Origin: Guillardia theta CCMP2712
Taxonomy: Eukaryota > Protista > Cryptophyta
Length of the DNA: 64,000 nt
Assembly: GCF_000315625.1 (NCBI RefSeq)
Contig: NW_005434612.1
Span: forward strand, 1 to 64,000
Direction of reading: 5' to 3'
Numbering within the stretch: position 1 is the stretch's first letter; every line of letters begins with the position of its first letter. Both the position numbers and the translations under genes were made by a program. A model generated the notes under the pieces. That model saw only the letters and a program-made list of their open reading frames with translations, made no database searches and was not told the origin of the DNA. Positions 40,795 to 64,000 of this stretch are shown in pieces.

Positions 40795-43700
40795 TCAATG
40801 TCTACTCTCACGAAAGAGCTTGCGAGGCCTCAACTCGTCCTCCCCGTCTTCCTGTCGCTGCTGGCATGGCCGTCAGATCTCTCGACTATGACCTCCAGTC
40901 TCACCTCTTGATTTTTCACTCGCTTCCTCCTGGTCAAACGGGTGCTCTGACTATCCTCCTCCTCCTCAAGCTCCTGGCAGTTCTTGATGATCTCCTGCCA
41001 AAGGCACACTCGTGACTACGAGGTAGCAGGAGGTCAGGAGGCCTACCTTGAGCTCCTTGTCGATGGAGTCAAGCTCATCTCTCTGCCGTTGCAGCTCCTT
41101 ATATGCTTTGGCTCTCCAGTACTCGACGATGCCCATCCTTGCACACCTCACTTGCTTGTCCAGCAGCGTCTGGCTCCCGTCCCATGAAATGACCTTGTTC
41201 GGTCGGTCCAGTCCCACCACCATCTCGCCTCGAAGCATGGAGCGCGTGCGGTAGCGGATGGCATCATCCGACTGCTCGAAGACGACGAGCCTCCTGAAGA
41301 ATCGCTCGGCGAAGGAGAGCAGCTTCCTGTCTGTCTCTGCATCACGAGACTTGTTGAGGACGATGAAGCTGTCGGCTCGTCCCAGGGCCCCGCGAGACTC
41401 CTCGACGTCCTCGGGCAACCTGTCCTGCTCTACCAGGCAAGCGCTCTTGACTCGACACTTGGACTGACGGCAGATGCCGTCCATCTGCTCATCCAAGTCT
41501 CCATCGCTCTGAAAGATGACGGAGTTGAGGTCCTCGCCGAAAGCTGTCGACAAGGCCGTCTGAATGTCTGCTGCCCGAGGATGGTCGATGGAGAACAAGG
41601 AGGAAATACACCCTAAAGCGTCCTTGCAGCTCGCAGGAATCTTGACATCTGTGACCTCCGTCTTGTACTGAAGATCGTCATACTTGTTCTTGAAGTCCTT
41701 GAACCGCTCGGTCAGCTCTGCATTGTGATTCCTGATGCCTGTTTGAAACCTCTCACAGTCTCGCTTCAGCTTCCCCAAGTCCGAAGTTGCTGCGATATCG
41801 ACGTAGTAAGATTGGATAGCAGGAGAGACACCCTCTCGCTTGAGGAGCCTTGCAATAGCGTTCTCGATGTTTTGATGGCATATGGATGTTTGTACCTCGA
41901 CCCTGAGCTTCTCCTCTTCTTCTGTGTCGTCTTCGATAATCACCGGCTGTTCCTCGAAGGCGATGTTGGCTCTGCTCGCCTCCTGCACCTCCTCGTTCTC
42001 GTTGTCATTGATTGCAGTGTCATCGTGCACGCCAGCAGATGCAGCAGGAAGCGTCACGTTCATCGTTCGCTGATCCAACGACCTTATGGCAATGTTGCTC
42101 TGCACGTTAAACACAAGCGTACAAGCGCATAACTCCTGCTGCTCTTGTCTCTGAGGCACGAGCGTGAAGGTTCCTTTGACCGTGGGATGACGAGCGTTGA
42201 GGGTTACCGCATTGGTCTCTATCCGGACGAGATGGTCCTCCAGCACCCGTGCCACCACTGTAGCCTCCCACTCGCTCGTGGGATGATAGTTTGTCTTTCG
42301 AGACGCCCGGTCACATGCAGCGAGCGTGAAGCCACACTGAAGAGGGTCGTCAGTCGCAGGAGCATGAAGCTGCAAGTCCAGCTGCTCTACAGGTCCTGTA
42401 GCAATGGCGTGAGATACAAGCGGACAATCATGTCAAGCAGACAGTGTCTCTTACCTGACTTCACCTCCACGTTACAAGGCTTGGAAGCGATCGGAGGTCC
42501 TGCATACGAGGGTCTCGAGTCGACAAACTCAGCCGAGACCTGATGACTCCCGATCTCGCTGAGAGAGAAGGTGACGTGTACGCAGTTGCCGTCGAAGTTC
42601 TTGTACGACATGGGTATCATCTGCTTTTCACGGTACAGCCTCACATCCGGCATGGTACTCGTAGACCAGTCGTCGAGCTTTCTTTGGTCTTCGGTGTGGA
42701 GTTGGATCAAAGCTTCGAAGTCTGCTGCTGCAAGAGCTGAGCCTTGTGCGTACTCAAGATGTTTCTGTCGGTCTTTCACCGTCATCGCGATCTGAATGAC
42801 GGAGTTCCTAGCAGTTGCGATGACATTGAAGGTGAACATCTGTACTCGTTTTGACAAGATTTTAGGAAAATACTCTCCTGCTGGAAGGGCTGGAATTGTG
42901 CTGAGCTTGAAAGCATCCCCCCTTGACTCATCTGATACTTTCTCAAGCTCCCTGCTCTGTTTGCCTACCTGCAGCATCAGCGGCTGATCCCATGCAGCTG
43001 ACAAGTTGTTGTCCACACTGTCTGTAACGATGAACCTGATGTCACATTCGTACTCCGCCATGCTGGGGACTGAGAGGTTGACGAACGCTTGGCAGTCTGG
43101 CTGTACGCATATCTTGCACGGATCACCAGCTATCAGGTCCAAGTCCAGCTCGATGGGCTTCAAGTTGTAAGACTTTGTGCCACCTATACCTGTTTTCACG
43201 TTGAGCTTCAGCCCAAGCTTGAGAGTGCCCTTGGAGGGTTTACAGCGAATGAAAGCATTCCTTACAGTGATCTTAGAGCCTTTGATCGTGATGTTCCCAA
43301 GGGCATCTTTGCCTTCTACCACTTTGCGGTAGTTGTCATATAAAGTGACCGGAACCTCAAACCCATCTTCGCACGTGAAACTGAAGGCAAACTCATCATC
43401 CAAAGAAGGTTGGATGGGCGGGAAAACCACATATCCATCTCGATCCACTATGACTCCTTCCAACGTGAACAAGTCTCCTGCTTTGATATCAGAGATGCCT
43501 TGTGGTAGAGAAATCTTCAGCTTCTCAGGCTCTCCGGGGGTCACCAGGACATCAAGTTGGTACTGAAACAGTCGCGTCTCCTCTTTCTTCGTCTGCTTCG
43601 AGCCTGCACAGGAGAAGACCGAGATGGTCTGCTTGGAATTAGATCGTACGTACAACGGAGGCAGCGCAAAGACTTGATCCCGACCGGCTTCATAGACTGG

Positions 43701-46700
43701 CAGCTGTGCATTCATCCAGCTCATTTCTACTTTCAAGTTTGACCTGCCGTCCGCAAAGTGCTGGCAGGGCTGGTTTGTCTCGTCAGCAGCCACAAGGTAC
43801 AAGTCTGAGATCTTGTCGTTGTGCCGTGCGTTGAACGACACTGCTGCATTGTTGAGAGCCAACTCGACTCCTGATTGGAAGAGCTTCATGCGCCTCGGAG
43901 TTCCGCTCGGCTTCAGGGGACGTGAGAACCTCTGATGCAAGATCGTCGTCTCGGTCTCGTGGATGACATCTAAAGTCGCTTGAAGGCTCCGGGGAAACTC
44001 GTCGGAGTTGCAGAAGAACACATTGTCTGCCATCACATCAAGATCCAAAGTGTGCCTGAGGGAATCGTGAAACACAAGGCAACGACCCGAGATGTCTGAC
44101 AGCTTGACGAGATCACCGGCCACTGAATCCATTTGTAAAAGTAAGCGAGGATGATCACTGGTCTCCGAGAAATATTCAACCAAGATTCCAGTTTCATGTA
44201 CATGATTGAGAATAGACTTGACCCTTCCGAATTTTCTAACCTTCTGCCGCGATCGTCGGGAATCTCCTACTGAAATTTCTGCACCAGAATTCAAAATGAC
44301 ACAATCTCCTGTTTGGAAAAAGCCATGCTCCCTGTGAAATACCCCGACCGGTGCGCCTTGCTTGAGTATCATTTCTCTCCATCGACCCATGTCTGCTTCA
44401 CTAACTACCGTCTGAGCTGTTGCCGTATCATTCGAGAACAAAGAGCTCGCACACGAGCAGGTCAGGCGACATCTCCCTTTCCGTATCTTGTTTTCATCCG
44501 ACTGGCTATCGCCGTGAAGCAGGAGGTCCGGGCTCATCACCACGAGCTTGCCTTGGTTTCCGTCGCACATGTTTCCGCTCGCGTCTTGAATGCTGACGTC
44601 GACTGGCCCGAGCTGTTGGTAGTTGATATACTCCTCCCAGTCAGCGTCGCACTGTATACACGATGGCTGCCCATGCTGGACTTTGATCGAGATATTGTGC
44701 TCAACGACCTTCTGCTGATGAATGTCTGTGATGACTATGCGAGCAGGATACGTCCCGACGCCCCCATGAAGCACGCAGAGGTCTTGGATCCTGATGCTCC
44801 CAGCGTACTCAGGCGTGAAGGATAGCGAGACATCTAGAGCCCGAGCCTCGTCTACCAGAATGTCAAGCGTGTGGACGCCGAGTTGGAGATCGATGCTATT
44901 GTTGTATTTGTCGTGCACCTGTACTTCTAAGGAGGTCGTTTGCCCGAGCTCACATTGGATGATCGGAGTGTCTGGTCTGAGCGATACCTTGTGCATCTCT
45001 GCTGGGGTGATGTAGAACGTCGCGGGCTCGCACGTGAGCGGCGTCTGACCTGCAGCTGGCTCAAGGGATATCGTATACCGGCCTGCGACAGTCGCGAGCT
45101 TCTTCACTATCTTATCAGGATACGACAGATGCCCATTGGACACTTCGAAGCTTTCTGAGCAATCTTGTGACGCCACTGTGACCTTGAAGATCGGGATGTT
45201 TGTTTGAATGACTTCGTTGTTTGAGTTCTTGCAGACAACCCTTGTAAGCGGTAACATGCCAGCCTTCACGATGTGGTTGCGGAACTCGATAGCGACTGAT
45301 CTGACTATCTGCTTCTCATTCTTTGCTCTGGTAGCCTCGAACTCTTTGTTGCTGAGGGGCCTCATGGAGTAGTTTTGTATTCTGAAGCGATTATGCTTCG
45401 TCATGCTGTTGTCTGAAGCCAATAGAAGAAGCTCGACCTCCCCTGACGGCAAGTTCAAGTCAAAGTGCTTATCTTGCAAGAACCTCTCGATCCTTCCTAT
45501 ATGACTTTCAATCTTTGCTCTCTCCTTTGTTTCTTTGTACAGCTCGACAAATTCACCCACCTTATACTCATTGTCGCAGAATATGATCTTGTCGTGCTGA
45601 GACATTCCTTCAGCATCTATGTACTTTGGGTTTTCGTCTTCGAAGGAGACCTCTGCATCAAACTTGAGGTGACATTCTTTGAGCCAGAAATCGTATGCTT
45701 TTGCAAGGTCCTTCGAGTCAAGTGCATCTTGTAATTTTCTCATTTTGGTTTTGCCCATGTTGAATGACCATTTGCTTGCCTCTGGCTCGATCCCTCGGTC
45801 TACAAAGAGAATGCCGAAAGTCCTTGCATAGCATCGCTGCGGAGCAAGCGTCTTCTCTTCCTCACGGTATCTCATGAAGCCAGGAACATACTGCTCCCCT
45901 GGAAGCCATCGTCCCATCCAGAACACCATGAAGCGGCGATCCAACGAGGTTGAGTGCCCATGCAGCTCGTCAACGTACGGGACTGTGTCCTTGTTGCCCT
46001 GGTTCGGGAAATAGAATATCGCCCCCGTCGCGATCGAGCGCTTGGTGGGGTCTGCATGGTCGGGGATCTCGACGTAGATGGGGAAGCAGTCCTTGGCGTC
46101 GTCGCTCAGCACTCGGTCAAGGCAGCACGTCGAGTCTGCAAGTCGATGCGGAGGGGCCGAGCTAGCAGAGCCTTGATGGATCACCTCGAACTCCAGGTCA
46201 ATCTGCTCCGACATAGAGCCAGACTGGTCTCTACATTGCTTCAGCAACTTCTTCAAGCGGCTCATATCTTCATGAAACCTGTGTTCCCTCTGTGGTTTAC
46301 GACCCGTTCGCTTCCCATCTACAATCGGCTGATCTATCAGCCTCAGCACCTGGTCTACAAACCTCTTCGCGCCTGCCTGCTCTCCTTCAAGGTACATGTA
46401 GTACATCGCTCGGATGTTGCTCAGGCAGTGCCTGAGAGCTGCCGCAGAGAAAGCTCCATCGCTGGTAAAGAAATCAATCTTGAAGCCTTCTATGTCGATC
46501 TTGCAGAAGCTCGACGCGACGTCTTCGCCCTCCTGGAGAGACCTGATGCATCTAATTGCTTTCCAAGCCGATAAGGTTGAGTCTTCCACTACTTGCACAG
46601 TTCTGCTGTCTCGCGTCTTACTGCTCACAACATGTCTTGTCCCAAGGGCATTACAAGCATTTTTGGCCCCCACGCCATATCGAGAGAAGGTACCGCTCAG

Positions 46701-47437
46701 ATATCTCCTGAACGATGTGCAACCCTCGTCGTACAGCTCCTGCGTAGATGCTCGCTTTGACCCATACTGAAGCATTTCCTTGGGGTCTGAGCAGCCTATT
46801 CCATTGTCCACAAGATGAAAAGTGCCCCTTTGGAAGTTGAGTGTAACTCTGATAGTTTTGTTCTTGTCGTATTGGTTGCAGAGTACATGTTGTATCGAGT
46901 TATCAAAAAGCTCCCCGATCGCTGTCAAGAAAGAGTAATTACTGGTCGAACTTTCTAACATGCGCCCTTTATCAGGTGTGGTATCTTCCACTGTGACACA
47001 CTTGAAGGTAGAGAGGGTGTCTGCCAATGATCACATCAGTTCTTGACATGTCTCAGCTCCGGCATTCACCTTTAGCGGGCAGCAGCAGAAGTTTGTACGG
47101 TCCGGCATTGGAGTCAAACTGGAGCGAAGAGACTTCCATGAGGGTAATAGCATTGTAAAGCTTGAGGCCCTGGTACAGGACATGCTTGTCAGTTGAGATA
47201 GCGCATCATGGAAGGATGCGACACCTTGACCGACAGGTTGAGCTCGTCAGTCAAGTGCTTTACGAGGCTCTCTACGGCTTGGAAGGTGTTGATCTCTTGG
47301 ATGCTCAGGCGGGTGGGAGGTCTGGGGCCACGTGGTCAGGTAAATCAAACATCAGCATACTTCTGTTACCTTGCGGTTCCATCGGTGGTAGGAGGTAATA
47401 CTTTATCATCGATGTGTATCTCAACAGGCTCAGCCAT
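40795..47437 (-). CDS. SMCHD1/GMI1-like protein (GHKL ATPase - transducer - BAH-like - beta-rich linker with extra BAH - coiled coil - SMC hinge), about 2,100 aa, about 7 exons
   Basis: GHKL motifs AIGELFDNS, LVDNGIG, FSRYGVGAKNA, VVSSK; SMCHD1-like transducer words FMVFWMGRWLP, RCYARTFGILF, FWLKECHLKFDAEVSF; hinge-like ALGCISSLFSID...ALSTAFGEDLNSVI and LVVFEQSDDAIRYR; a short intron at about 42388-42454 joins the 1546-aa and 469-aa ORFs. Confidence 0.85.
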
Positions 47438-47711
47438 CTGTTGACGGTTCAGCTCTTTTTCCTCATCCTCTGTGTATTGATAGATGCGTTGATGAAAAGA
47501 AGGAGAAGCGCGAGCCGAGGGGGAAGGGAAGGTGGATAGGAATGAAGAATGTGAGGGGAGCGAGGGGAGGGAGAAGAGAGGAGAAGAATCCGCAAGCGGA
47601 AGGGAGGGAGAAGAATGGAAGGTTCCAGGATGAAGAAGTTTTTTGTGGCGGGCGGGAGGGAGGAAAGCTAAAAGTTGAGATAATGACAGTAGAGGGAGAA
47701 AGAAATGGAGA

Positions 47712-48021
47712 GAGGAGCGGGGAGGAGCGGGGAGGAGCGGGTAGGAGCGGGGAGGAGCGGGGAGGAGCAGGGAGGAGCGGGGAGGAGCGGGGAGGAGCGG
47801 GGAGGAGCAGGGAGGAGCGGGGAGGAGTAGGGAGGAGCGGGGAGGAGCGGGGAGGAGCAGGGAGGAGTGGGGAGGAGCGGGGAGGAGCGGGGAGGAGCGG
47901 GGAGGAGCGGGGAGGAGCGGGGAGGAGCGGGGAGGAGCGGGGAGGAGCGGGGAGGAGCGGGGAGGAGCGGGGAGGAGCGGGGAGGAGCGGGGAGGAGCGG
48001 GGAGGAGCGGGGAGGAGCGGG
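47712..48021. repeat. 10-bp G-rich tandem repeat (ggaggagcgg)n upstream of the SMCHD1-like gene
   Basis: About 30 units with occasional single-base variants. Confidence 0.92.
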
Positions 48022-48948
48022 GTAAGTGGAGCAGGCTCAGTGGGGAGAGAGGTGAGCTCGAGGGGGTTAAGAGAAGCAAGAAGGACTGAGCAGGCTCGCC
48101 TCAGAACTTTCTCCTATTTAACTAATAGTTAATCCTATTTGACTAATAATTTCTCCTATTCGCCCGTTACACGGACAGACCCACCTGCAGACCCACAAAC
48201 TGAGGTTGGACTGAGTGGGGACGAGGGGTCACTCCTTGCTGGGTTGTGGGGGGGATGAGGGACGAAAGTTGGAGGTCGGCATGGAAGTTGGCACCCAGTG
48301 TTGGTACCGGCCGCAGGTAACCCCCACCCCCTTCGAAATAACCCCCTGTCATAATTCTGCATGTGACCCCTATCTAAAAAGTTAAATTCATAGTACCCCC
48401 ATGGGTATTTTGGAGCATTCCCGTTGACTACCCCCGTCTATAACACCCCTACCCCCTATTCAAGAATTCGCAACAGAAACCGCCCAAGAATGTTGTCTTT
48501 CGCTCCCGCTGCTCTCGCATGCTTGCCATCGCGATCATAATTTCTCCTCTCCCTTGTCCTTTCTTCTCAGCCGACCCAATCTTTCCCGTCCTTGCATATC
48601 TGCTTCCTTGATCCTACTTCTCTACCTTCCCCAACGACTCGACTCGCCCTCATCCCTCAAATTTCAATCCCTTGCTACCAGCCCCCCAGTCTTGTCCATT
48701 GCTCGTCCTTGTACTTGTTTAACTCTTTATTTCTATTGCTAATCTCTCCTGTCCTCCCCCCTATCTGCCCTTGCATCTGTTGGAGAGCACTGAGCACTGA
48801 ACCTGCTCCACGAGCCTTATCCGGCATTTCCGTCCCCTGCTTTACCCTCAATCAACTCACAATTGTTGCCTCCTACTTTTCTTTCCCTGCCTCTTCACCT
48901 GATCCTCCTGTTGACAACTTGTTCCCCTCGGGCTGAAGTTTTGTTCAG

Positions 48949-55119: not shown

Positions 55120-56016
55120 ATGTTCGCCAATAAAGCCATTCCAACGCCTTCAAAATCAGGGGAAAATAAAGGTATCTTCAAAAAGATGAACTCAACAGGA
55201 CAAGCTGGCAGCAACAGCCAAGACGGTTCGAGCCGTAGCTTGACTCATGGATCGGATCTGGACATCTTCAAAGCAGCGTCTGCTGGCTCCTTGAACCTGC
55301 TCAAGGACCTCATTGCTGCTGGCCAGCCCATCGATGCTACGGACGAGTCTCGGAGAACAGCTCTTCATCATGGTTCACGAGGAGGCTATTATGAGCTGGT
55401 TGAGTACCTCCTGGCAGCCAAGGCAGACCCCAAGGCAAAGACCAAGGAGAACGGGTGGACCCCTCTGCATGAAGCGAGCTCAGGTGAAGTGGCGGAGCTA
55501 CTTATCCTATCCAAAGCAGAAGTCAACGATTTTGATGCCTGGGGGATGTCCCCCCTTCACATCGCCGCGAAGGAGGGCAACGTTGACGTGGTGCGATGTC
55601 TGGTGCAGTACAAGGCTCTCCTGAACCCGAAAGACGGCCTGGGTCGAACTCCCCTCCACCTCGCCTCGCAGAATGGACACCTCGAAGTCGTCCAGGAGCT
55701 GGCGTCCGACGGCGCAAACTTGCACTCTCTTGACAACAAGCACAGGACCGCGAGGGACAATGCGATGAGTTACGGGCATCGAGAAATCACCAAGGAGTTC
55801 GAGAAGATCGAGGAGCTTCTCGGTACCATGGGCGTCGGAGGAGAATCCCTGCGAGCGCTGCCGGCAGGATCTCCGGCCAGGCTCGCGAAAGGACCGAACA
55901 ACAGCCCGATCGTGCGCCCCAAGACAGCAGATCGCGTCTTCGATGATACGGATGAAGGAGCAGCAGCGGGAGGAGGGAAACCGAATGAAAGCCAAGTATT
56001 GAAGTTTGATGATTGA
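55120..56016 (+). CDS. Ankyrin-repeat protein
   Basis: RTALHHGS, GWTPLHEA, GMSPLHIAA, GRTPLHLAS repeats in an intronless 298-aa ORF. Confidence 0.93.
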   Translation: MFANKAIPTPSKSGENKGIFKKMNSTGQAGSNSQDGSSRSLTHGSDLDIFKAASAGSLNLLKDLIAAGQPIDATDESRRTALHHGSRGGYYELVEYLLAAKADPKAKTKENGWTPLHEASSGEVAELLILSKAEVNDFDAWGMSPLHIAAKEGNVDVVRCLVQYKALLNPKDGLGRTPLHLASQNGHLEVVQELASDGANLHSLDNKHRTARDNAMSYGHREITKEFEKIEELLGTMGVGGESLRALPAGSPARLAKGPNNSPIVRPKTADRVFDDTDEGAAAGGGKPNESQVLKFDD

Positions 56017-61604: not shown

Positions 61605-64000
61605 ATGGATCGCCAAATGACTCAAATTGATATCTTGTTTCCGACCATCGATAATGATGAATCTTGCAAAACCCTAAGGTAACAGAAGTATGCTGATGTT
61701 TGATTTATCTGACCACATGGCCCCAGACCTCCCACCCGCCTGAGCATCCAAGAGATCAACACCTTCCAAGACGTAGAGAGCCTCGTAAAGCACTTGACAG
61801 ACGAGCTCAACCTGTCGGTCAAGGTGTCGCATCCTTCCATGATGCGCTATCTCAACTGACAAGCATGTCCTGTACCAGGGCCTCAAGCTTTACAATGCTA
61901 TTACCCTCATGGAAGTCTCTTCGCTCCAGTTTGACTCCGATGCCGGACCGTACAAACTTCTGCTGCTGCCCGCTGAAGGTAAATGCCGGAGCTGAGACAT
62001 GTCAAGAACTGATGTGATCATTGGCAGACACCCTCTCTACCTTCAAGTGTGTCACAGTGGAAGATACCACACCTGATAAAGGGCGCATGTTAGAAAGTTC
62101 GATCAGTAATTACTCTTTCTTGACAGCGATCGGGGAGCTTTTTGATAACTCGATACAACATGTACTCTGCAACCAATATGACAAGAACAAAACTATCAAA
62201 GTTACACTCGACTTCCAAAGGGGCACTTTTCATCTTGTGGACAATGGAATAGGCTGCTCAGACCCCAAGGAAATGCTTCAGTATGGGTCAAAGCGCGCAT
62301 CTACGCAGGAGCTGTACGACGAGGGTTGCACATCGTTCAGGAGATATCTGAGCGGTACCTTCTCTCGATATGGCGTGGGGGCCAAAAATGCTTGTAATGC
62401 CCTTGGGACAAGACATGTTGTGAGCAGTAAGACGCGAGACAGCAGAACTGTGCAAGTAGTGGAAGACTCAACCTTATCGGCTTGGAAAGCAATTAGATGC
62501 ATCAGGTCTCTCCAGGAGGGCGAAGACGTCGCGTCGAGCTTCTGCAAGATCGACATAGAAGGCTTCAAGATTGATTTCTTTATCAGCGATGGAGCTTTCT
62601 CTGCGGCAGCTCTCAGGCACTGCCTGAGCAACATCCGAGCGATGTACTACATGTACCTTGAAGGAGAGCAGGCAGGCGCGAAGAGGTTTGTAGACCAGGT
62701 GCTGAGGCTGATAGATCAGCCAAATGCAGAGATGAGACGACGCGGACGGATCGCAAACGCAAAAAAATTTTATCAACACGACCTGAGCTGCTTGAGGACG
62801 ATGCTGAACAAATATCTTGTTGAGTCTGGCTCTATGTCGGAGCAGATTGACCTGGAGTTCGAGGTGATCCATCAAGACTCTGCTAGCTCGGCCCCTCCGC
62901 ATCGACTAGCAGACTCGATGTGCTGCCTTGACCGAGTGCTGAGCGACGACGCCAGGGACTGCTTCCCCATCTACGTCGAGATCCCCGACCATGCAGACCC
63001 CACCAAGCGCTCGATCGCTACGGGGGCGATATTCTACTTTCCGAACCAGGGCAACAAGGACACAGTCCCGTACGTTGACGAGCTGCATGGGCACTCAAGC
63101 TCATTGGATCGCCGCTTCATGGTGTTCTGGATGGGACGATGGCTTCCTGAAGAAGATTTCGTACCAGGTTTCATGAGATACCGTGAGGGGGATAAGCCGC
63201 TTGCCCCGCAGCGATGCTATGCAAGGACTTTCGGCATTCTTTTTGTAGACCGAGGGATCGAGCCAGAGGCAAACAAGCTGGCCCTGAGCAAGTCTGCTCC
63301 AAATGTAAAGAAGATGAAGGAGGCGATTGACTCGAAGGACCTTGCAAAAGCATATGATTACTGGCTCAAAGAATGTCACCTCAAGTTTGATGCAGAGGTC
63401 TCCTTCGAAGACGAAAACCCAAAGTACATAGATGCTGAAGGAATGTCTCAGCACGACAAGATCATATTCTGCGACAATGTGTATAAGGTGGGTGAATTCG
63501 TCGAGCTGTACAAAGAGTCAAAGGAGAAAGCAAAGATTGAAAGTCATATAGGAAGGATCGAGAGGTTCTTGCAAGATAAGCACTTTGACCTGCACTTGCC
63601 AACAGGGGAGGTCGAGCTTCTTCTATTGGCTTCAGACAACAGCATGACGAAGCATAATCGCTTCAGAATACAAAACTATTCCATGAGGCCCCTCAGCAAC
63701 AAAGAGTTCGAGGCTACCAGAGCAAAGAATGAGAAGCAGATAGTCAGATCAGTCGCTATCGAGTTCCGCAACCACATCGTGAAGGCTGGCATGTTACCGC
63801 TTACAAGGGTTGTCTGCAAGAACTCAAACAACGAAGTCATTCAGACAAACATCCCGATCTTCAAGGTCACAGTGGCGTCACAAGATTGCTTGGAAAGCTT
63901 CGAAGTGTCTAATGGGCTTCTGTCTTCTCCTGAAAAGATAGTGCCCAATGGGCATCTGTCTTTTCCTGACAAGATAGTGAAGAAGCTCGCGACTGTCGCA
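61605..64000 (+). CDS. Second SMCHD1/GMI1-like paralog (5' part; runs off the window end)
   Basis: 61677-64000 is a near-identical reverse complement of about 47372-45089, including three introns; no stop seen in the stretches I translated from about 62027; the first exon differs (MDRQMTQIDILFPTIDNDESCKTLR). Confidence 0.85.

Follow-up and report, generated by a model that had tools for sequence, protein, structure and literature searches.

Two near-identical copies of an SMCHD1-like ATPase gene, arranged as an inverted repeat in the cryptophyte Guillardia theta CCMP2712, have probably evolved in concert over a long time through gene conversion, which would have left fast-evolving segments behind as conversion-resistant islands. 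A 34-codon cassette within the ATPase gene is one of these islands. The two copies and a third recent paralog form a block mosaic; synonymous divergence inside the patches is old, silent sites around them are homogenised, and the copy 2 cassette has no donor in the assembly. We infer the mechanism by which the islands escaped homogenisation from these observations. The evidence comes from a single assembly, in which the copy 2 version of the cassette is seen in one gene copy only.

An inverted pair of SMCHD1-like genes

The window, a 64,000-nucleotide stretch of DNA, corresponds to positions 1–64,000 of scaffold C62 in the 87-Mb G. theta assembly, which consists of 669 scaffolds with gaps. It contains the large exon of copy 1 in full and the first part of that of copy 2 (Table 1). 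The two genes lie head-to-head as mirror images, and the arms that carry them are separated by 14.3 kb. With the divergent patches removed, the copies are 98.2% identical (1.8% divergence). Their introns and 5′ flanks are 96–100% identical, so that homogenisation extends to silent and non-coding positions to the same degree as to coding ones. The spacer between the arms harbors an open frame of 298 codons (55120–56016) that encodes ankyrin repeats (Ank_2, E = 8e-41). Five more long open frames, four in the spacer and one at the left-arm boundary (47366–48079), gave no Pfam match.

A third recent paralog, copy 3, occupies positions 98941–103611 of the same scaffold, 38 kb away, and its large exon is about 95% identical to those of copies 1 and 2. 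Similarity to copies 1 and 2 is limited to this exon and falls to background exactly at both of its ends. Copy 3 also contains moderately diverged stretches of its own (77–82% identity in 60-nt windows) near scaffold positions 102223 and 101062.

The product of copy 1 is an SMCHD1-like GHKL ATPase followed by an S5/transducer domain and a long linker. The Pfam profile HATPase_c_3 (GHKL ATPase) matches copy 1 with 26.8 bits (cut-off 25), and the sequence GELFDNSIQ, which corresponds to motif I (E-x-x-D-N), is common to all three copies. The profile SMCHD1_S5 (PF22899) scores 51 bits (cut-off 27) and places an SMCHD1-type S5/transducer domain after the ATPase. Searches with phmmer also match 6MW7, the solved ATPase module of human SMCHD1, and a family profile aligns to this module over residues 88–559 (E = 1.1e-53). 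Matches to the SMC hinge in the profile comparison stem from full-length homologues in the alignment and not from copy 1 or copy 2. An AlphaFold (AF2) model of the first 560 residues of copy 2 has a pLDDT of 82 and a pTM of 0.82; the best four Foldseek matches to this model are chains of 6MW7 (E = 4e-17 to 5e-16). Human SMCHD1, in which the GHKL domain is annotated at residues 111–365 and the transducer at residues 396–578 (PMC6620310), has both the GHKL/Bergerat core and the S5/transducer fold in common with the algal proteins, and the E..DN motif and FxxFWxGR transducer segment are conserved. The human protein differs in having only about 18% sequence identity to its algal counterparts and in missing about 18 residues at the position of the algal cassette (near human residues 343–372 in the profile alignment). 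It is encoded by one gene, whereas Guillardia has a family.

An N-terminal protein search identified at least 8 full SMCHD1-like paralogs and one weak fragment in G. theta. Hanusia phi has at least 4 homologues, and three or four clades are common to both algae. Five distant Guillardia paralogs (37–47% protein identity) belong to clades with H. phi homologues, and copies 1–3 form a separate clade. The H. phi proteins found include no member of this clade and, therefore, do not show that the pair of copies 1 and 2 predates a speciation.

Divergent patches and the 34-residue cassette

Full alignment of the repeat revealed that divergence between copies 1 and 2 is distributed in blocks rather than evenly. 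The patches number at least seven, have sharp edges and include the cassette (patch A); two weaker ones lie in the 3′ part. The patches occupy 664 of 6870 aligned columns (10%) and contain 288 of the 398 differences (72%); the remaining 110 differences are spread over 6206 nt. An earlier reading of the window, made from sequence only, had described the cassette as a hypervariable stretch between otherwise near-identical paralogs. It does not stand alone and is comparable to at least six further patches. The alignment of patch C includes a −1/+1 indel pair. The 36-nt segment present only in copy 2 repeats, as a diverged tandem duplicate, the 12 codons that follow it (SNGLLSSPEKIVP preceding NGHLSFPDKIVKK).

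Table 1. Coordinates of the gene copies, repeat arms and divergent patches (window positions unless C62 is given; counterpart positions of copy 2 beyond 64,000 are scaffold positions).
Feature	Position	Strand	Counterpart	Description
Copy 1, large exon	42387–47027	−		Open frame, 1546 codons
Copy 2, large exon	62021–64000	+		Extends past the window edge; full exon C62 62021–66704, 1560 codons
Inverted repeat, left arm (copy 1)	40800–47378	−		About 6.5 kb including introns and 5′ region
Inverted repeat, right arm (copy 2)	61670–64000	+		Reaches about C62 68250, outside the window
Patch A, copy 2 version	62723–62824	+		34 codons, NAEMRRRGRIAN...LNKYLVE
Patch A, copy 1 version	46224–46325	−		34 codons, IVDGKRTGRKPQ...KQCRDQ; shared by copy 3 (96% nt identity)
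Patch A2	63148–63169 (copy 2)	+	Copy 1, 45879–45900	50% nt identity; differences mostly synonymous
Patch B	63273–63326 (copy 2)	+	Copy 1, 45722–45775	43% nt identity, 3/19 residues identical; copy 3 has the copy 1 version
Insertion, copy 2 only	63909–63944	+		36 nt, in frame
Patch C	44087–44319 (copy 1)	−	Copy 2, 64765–65003	65% nt identity; copy 1 odd, copy 2 = copy 3
Patch D	43386–43431 (copy 1)	−	Copy 2, 65659–65704	35% nt identity; copy 1 odd, copy 2 = copy 3
Patch E	42837–42857 (copy 1)	−	Copy 2, 66233–66253	38% nt identity; copy 2 odd, copy 1 = copy 3

As the sequence-only reading had described, copies 1 and 2 each carry an in-frame cassette of 34 residues between identical flanks, DQP and SGSMSE. 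The ends given there lie 1–2 nt off the exact codon limits. The two versions agree in only 7 of 34 residues and 56% of bases, compared with 98–100% identity in the flanks, and both are basic (11 K+R vs 5 D+E in copy 1; 8 vs 3 in copy 2). Both edges are abrupt: about 220 bases are identical on the upstream side and 58 on the downstream side. The 102 nt of patch A contain 45 differences; when the differences were permuted along the repeat, an interval of this length had 13.9 on average and never more than 22.

Local alignment of the two cassette DNAs gives a score of 25, compared with 9.2 ± 1.8 for shuffled sequences (about 8.8 shuffle SDs). Origin by inversion was rejected, as the reverse-complement alignment scores at shuffle level; origin by compensated frameshift was rejected as well, owing to stops in the other reading frames. 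The cassettes are thus diverged descendants of one segment rather than filler. Both retain residues typical of the family (GR, D-M/L-x-x-L, and ML-x-K-Y/F). At positions 46245–46260, within the cassette, copy 3 reads KTML, copy 1 KKLL, and copy 2 RTML. These two codons of copy 2 type in an otherwise copy 1-type cassette reflect either micro-conversion or a change specific to copy 1.

In the predicted structure of copy 2, residues 235–245 form a low-confidence loop (pLDDT <50 at residues 236–243) that precedes a helix (residues 246–268) whose end falls on the boundary of the cassette; next comes the first strand of the transducer (residues 276–283). The model, with a disordered basic loop plus a helix between the GHKL core and the transducer, fits the putative surface loop that had been expected there. 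Across the family, the cassette region retains only a hydrophobic pattern (D-M/L-x-x-L ... M/L-L ... Y/F) together with a basic loop. No other region varies as much within the family; part of it is missing in human SMCHD1, and a Naegleria homologue contains an acidic insert at this position. The cassette may have a role in specificity.

Mosaic structure, age and the search for a donor

Copy 3 carries the copy 1 version at patches A, A2, B, and E and the copy 2 version at patches C and D. When stretches of agreeing variable sites were compared in a Sawyer-type test, the longest spanned 36 sites for copies 1 and 3 and 33 for copies 2 and 3, whereas permutations reached at most 13 (p ≤ 0.0005). 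The three copies thus form a significant block mosaic.

Outside the patches, copies 1 and 2 differ with a dS of 0.05 and a dN of 0.02. For all patches pooled, dS is about 1.1 (pS 0.58) and dN 0.44 (ω about 0.4); synonymous sites have changed in a larger proportion than nonsynonymous ones (Fisher p = 2e-6). Patch A alone has a dS of 0.6 and a dN of 0.68 (pS 0.415, pN 0.448), which corresponds to an ω of about 1.1 based on 8.5 synonymous and 36.5 nonsynonymous changes; ω in its flanks is about 0.3. In patch B, synonymous sites are saturated. The contrast in dS between patches and surroundings, combined with the pooled ω, indicates that the patches are old DNA whose constraint is ordinary or relaxed, and not the product of a recent adaptive burst. 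With synonymous divergence about 20 times that of the flanks and a mosaic of three copies, the proposal that the cassette is an old, divergent stretch spared by gene conversion is supported. The accompanying proposal that selection protected this segment is not borne out by the ω values of the cassette and of the pooled patches or by the mostly synonymous differences in patch A2. Positive selection on the cassette was not detected in that dN/dS is not clearly above 1, and an ω of about 1 fits drift and diversifying selection alike.

A comparison of relative rates points in the same direction as the synonymous sites. Pairs of family members whose cassettes are 17–25% identical are only 49–61% identical across the rest of the N-terminal region, compared with 96% for copies 1 and 2. 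Differences between copies 1 and 2 favour columns of low family-wide conservation (0.22 vs 0.36, p = 1.5e-8), yet many poorly conserved stretches are nonetheless identical between them. Low constraint consequently predicts the location of islands only in part and was rejected as a sufficient predictor.

The sequence-only reading had offered donation by a third paralog as an alternative origin of the cassette and a genome search for further variants as a way to examine it. Copy 3 carries the copy 1 version, and a whole-genome DNA search with the copy 2 cassette finds only the cassette itself. Compared codon by codon with the five distant paralogs, the copy 2 cassette shows 31–46% nucleotide identity, which is no better than chance and below its identity to copy 1. 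The flanks of these paralogs are only 52–59% identical, too low for the role of donor. Word-based protein searches for cassette variants elsewhere returned only Guillardia gene models and H. phi homologues at 35–50% identity. An array of silent donors of the VSG or chicken immunoglobulin type was likewise not seen: the genome search found no silent cassette copies, and no paralog found has the cassette of copy 2. A 216-nt piece on scaffold C53 (about 292551–292766) is 100% identical to copy 1 (window positions 43961–44176, a match to its patch C). It lies directly after a 100-N gap within GA-rich low-complexity DNA; we rejected it as a further paralog and read it as most likely a misplacement in the assembly.

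Explanations for the islands and comparison with known systems

The explanation we favor, concerted evolution with conversion-resistant islands, suggests a model in which copies 1 and 2 are an old inverted pair. Non-reciprocal recombination would have kept about 90% of the 6.5 kb near-identical, introns included, and the large exon of copy 3 would have joined in the exchange. Some short segments would have escaped homogenisation early and then continued to diverge, producing sharp islands such as the 34-codon cassette. Once a fast-evolving stretch has accumulated more heterology than recombination can accommodate, tracts of conversion may stop there or restore it, and the island would then persist with or without selection. 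The longest identical run between copies 1 and 2 outside the patches is 286 nt, consistent with a uniform divergence of 1.8%; runs of this length do not directly reveal conversion that is ongoing or very recent, and one homogenising event fits as well.

A rather unlikely rival holds that selection maintains the cassette difference because the cassette determines specificity (for DNA, chromatin, a partner, or the choice of dimer) and conversions that erase the difference are purged. This account overlaps with the favored one and differs solely in the reason why the island persists. Such selection would produce a peak of divergence like that at exon 5 of the primate opsin genes. In its favor, cassette length, basic charge, and the hydrophobic positions of the helix are retained while other positions differ; ω is higher in patch A than in its flanks; the predicted flexible loop and helix sit at the GHKL/transducer junction; and the family is an expanded one, with at least 8 paralogs. 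However, an ω of about 1 is expected from relaxed constraint and is derived here from few changes, the value over all patches is well below 1, and the region varies most in the family and is partly missing in the human protein. Patch A2, with its mostly synonymous differences, argues further against selection since islands can evidently form without divergence at the protein level. We regard as quite improbable a different history, in which the genes duplicated recently (dS about 0.05) and then received short foreign patches through ectopic gene conversion from one or more diverged paralogs that are now lost or not assembled. Such a history would be consistent with the finding that only one of three copies is odd at every patch, with the uniform background divergence outside the patches, and with the gaps and numerous scaffolds of the assembly. 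It is opposed by the lack of a second genomic match to the copy 2 cassette and by the low identity of the distant paralogs in both cassette and flanks. Moreover, a suitable donor would need near-identical flanks around divergent patches, which leads back to concerted evolution. That a chimeric or misassembled read underlies one version of the cassette is least likely of all and barely credible. The fragment on scaffold C53 shows that small misplacements occur in the assembly, but both versions of the cassette are in frame, equal in length, and endowed with family-typical residues. Copy 3 independently supports the copy 1 version at patches A and B and the copy 2 version at patches C and D, and seven patches of like properties are improbable as errors.

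Concerted evolution with islands as the preferred reading leaves room for a bolder idea, which we consider unlikely: the islands may be functional specificity modules kept different by selection in an expanded, possibly conflict-related SMCHD1-like family. If so, each copy would have its own target, or heterodimers between near-identical paralogs would be prevented, and gene palindromes of Guillardia would pair a conserved engine with exchangeable recognition patches. Whatever their cause, the patches mark segments of an SMCHD1-type ATPase that can, or must, differ from one paralog to the next, and they are natural places to look for an influence on target choice or dimer-partner choice. The locus displays gene conversion and divergence coexisting within one gene in an unusually clean manner.

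Primate Y-chromosome ampliconic palindromes consist of gene-bearing inverted arms that intrachromosomal conversion keeps near-identical. Copies 1 and 2 resemble them in the inverted, gene-carrying arms held near-identical; they differ in that the arms measure only 6.5 kb, internal islands persist, and a third, non-palindromic copy exchanges sequence with them. Peaks of divergence in duplicates that undergo gene conversion are a described signature, known from opsins, RHD/RHCE, and protocadherins (PMC3924837) and treated by Teshima and Innan (2008), whose work is reviewed in the same article. With these systems, in which the opsin example is exon 5 of the red and green genes in primates and the protocadherins are gene clusters, the present case shares near-identical coding and non-coding DNA, short divergent regions, and a mosaic phylogeny. 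Unlike those cases, copies 1 and 2 contain seven or more islands whose edges are very sharp and whose synonymous sites are nearly saturated, and they form an inverted pair 14 kb apart in a cryptophyte alga, with selection on the islands only a candidate. The pair is a clean new example of a known process and not a new mechanism.
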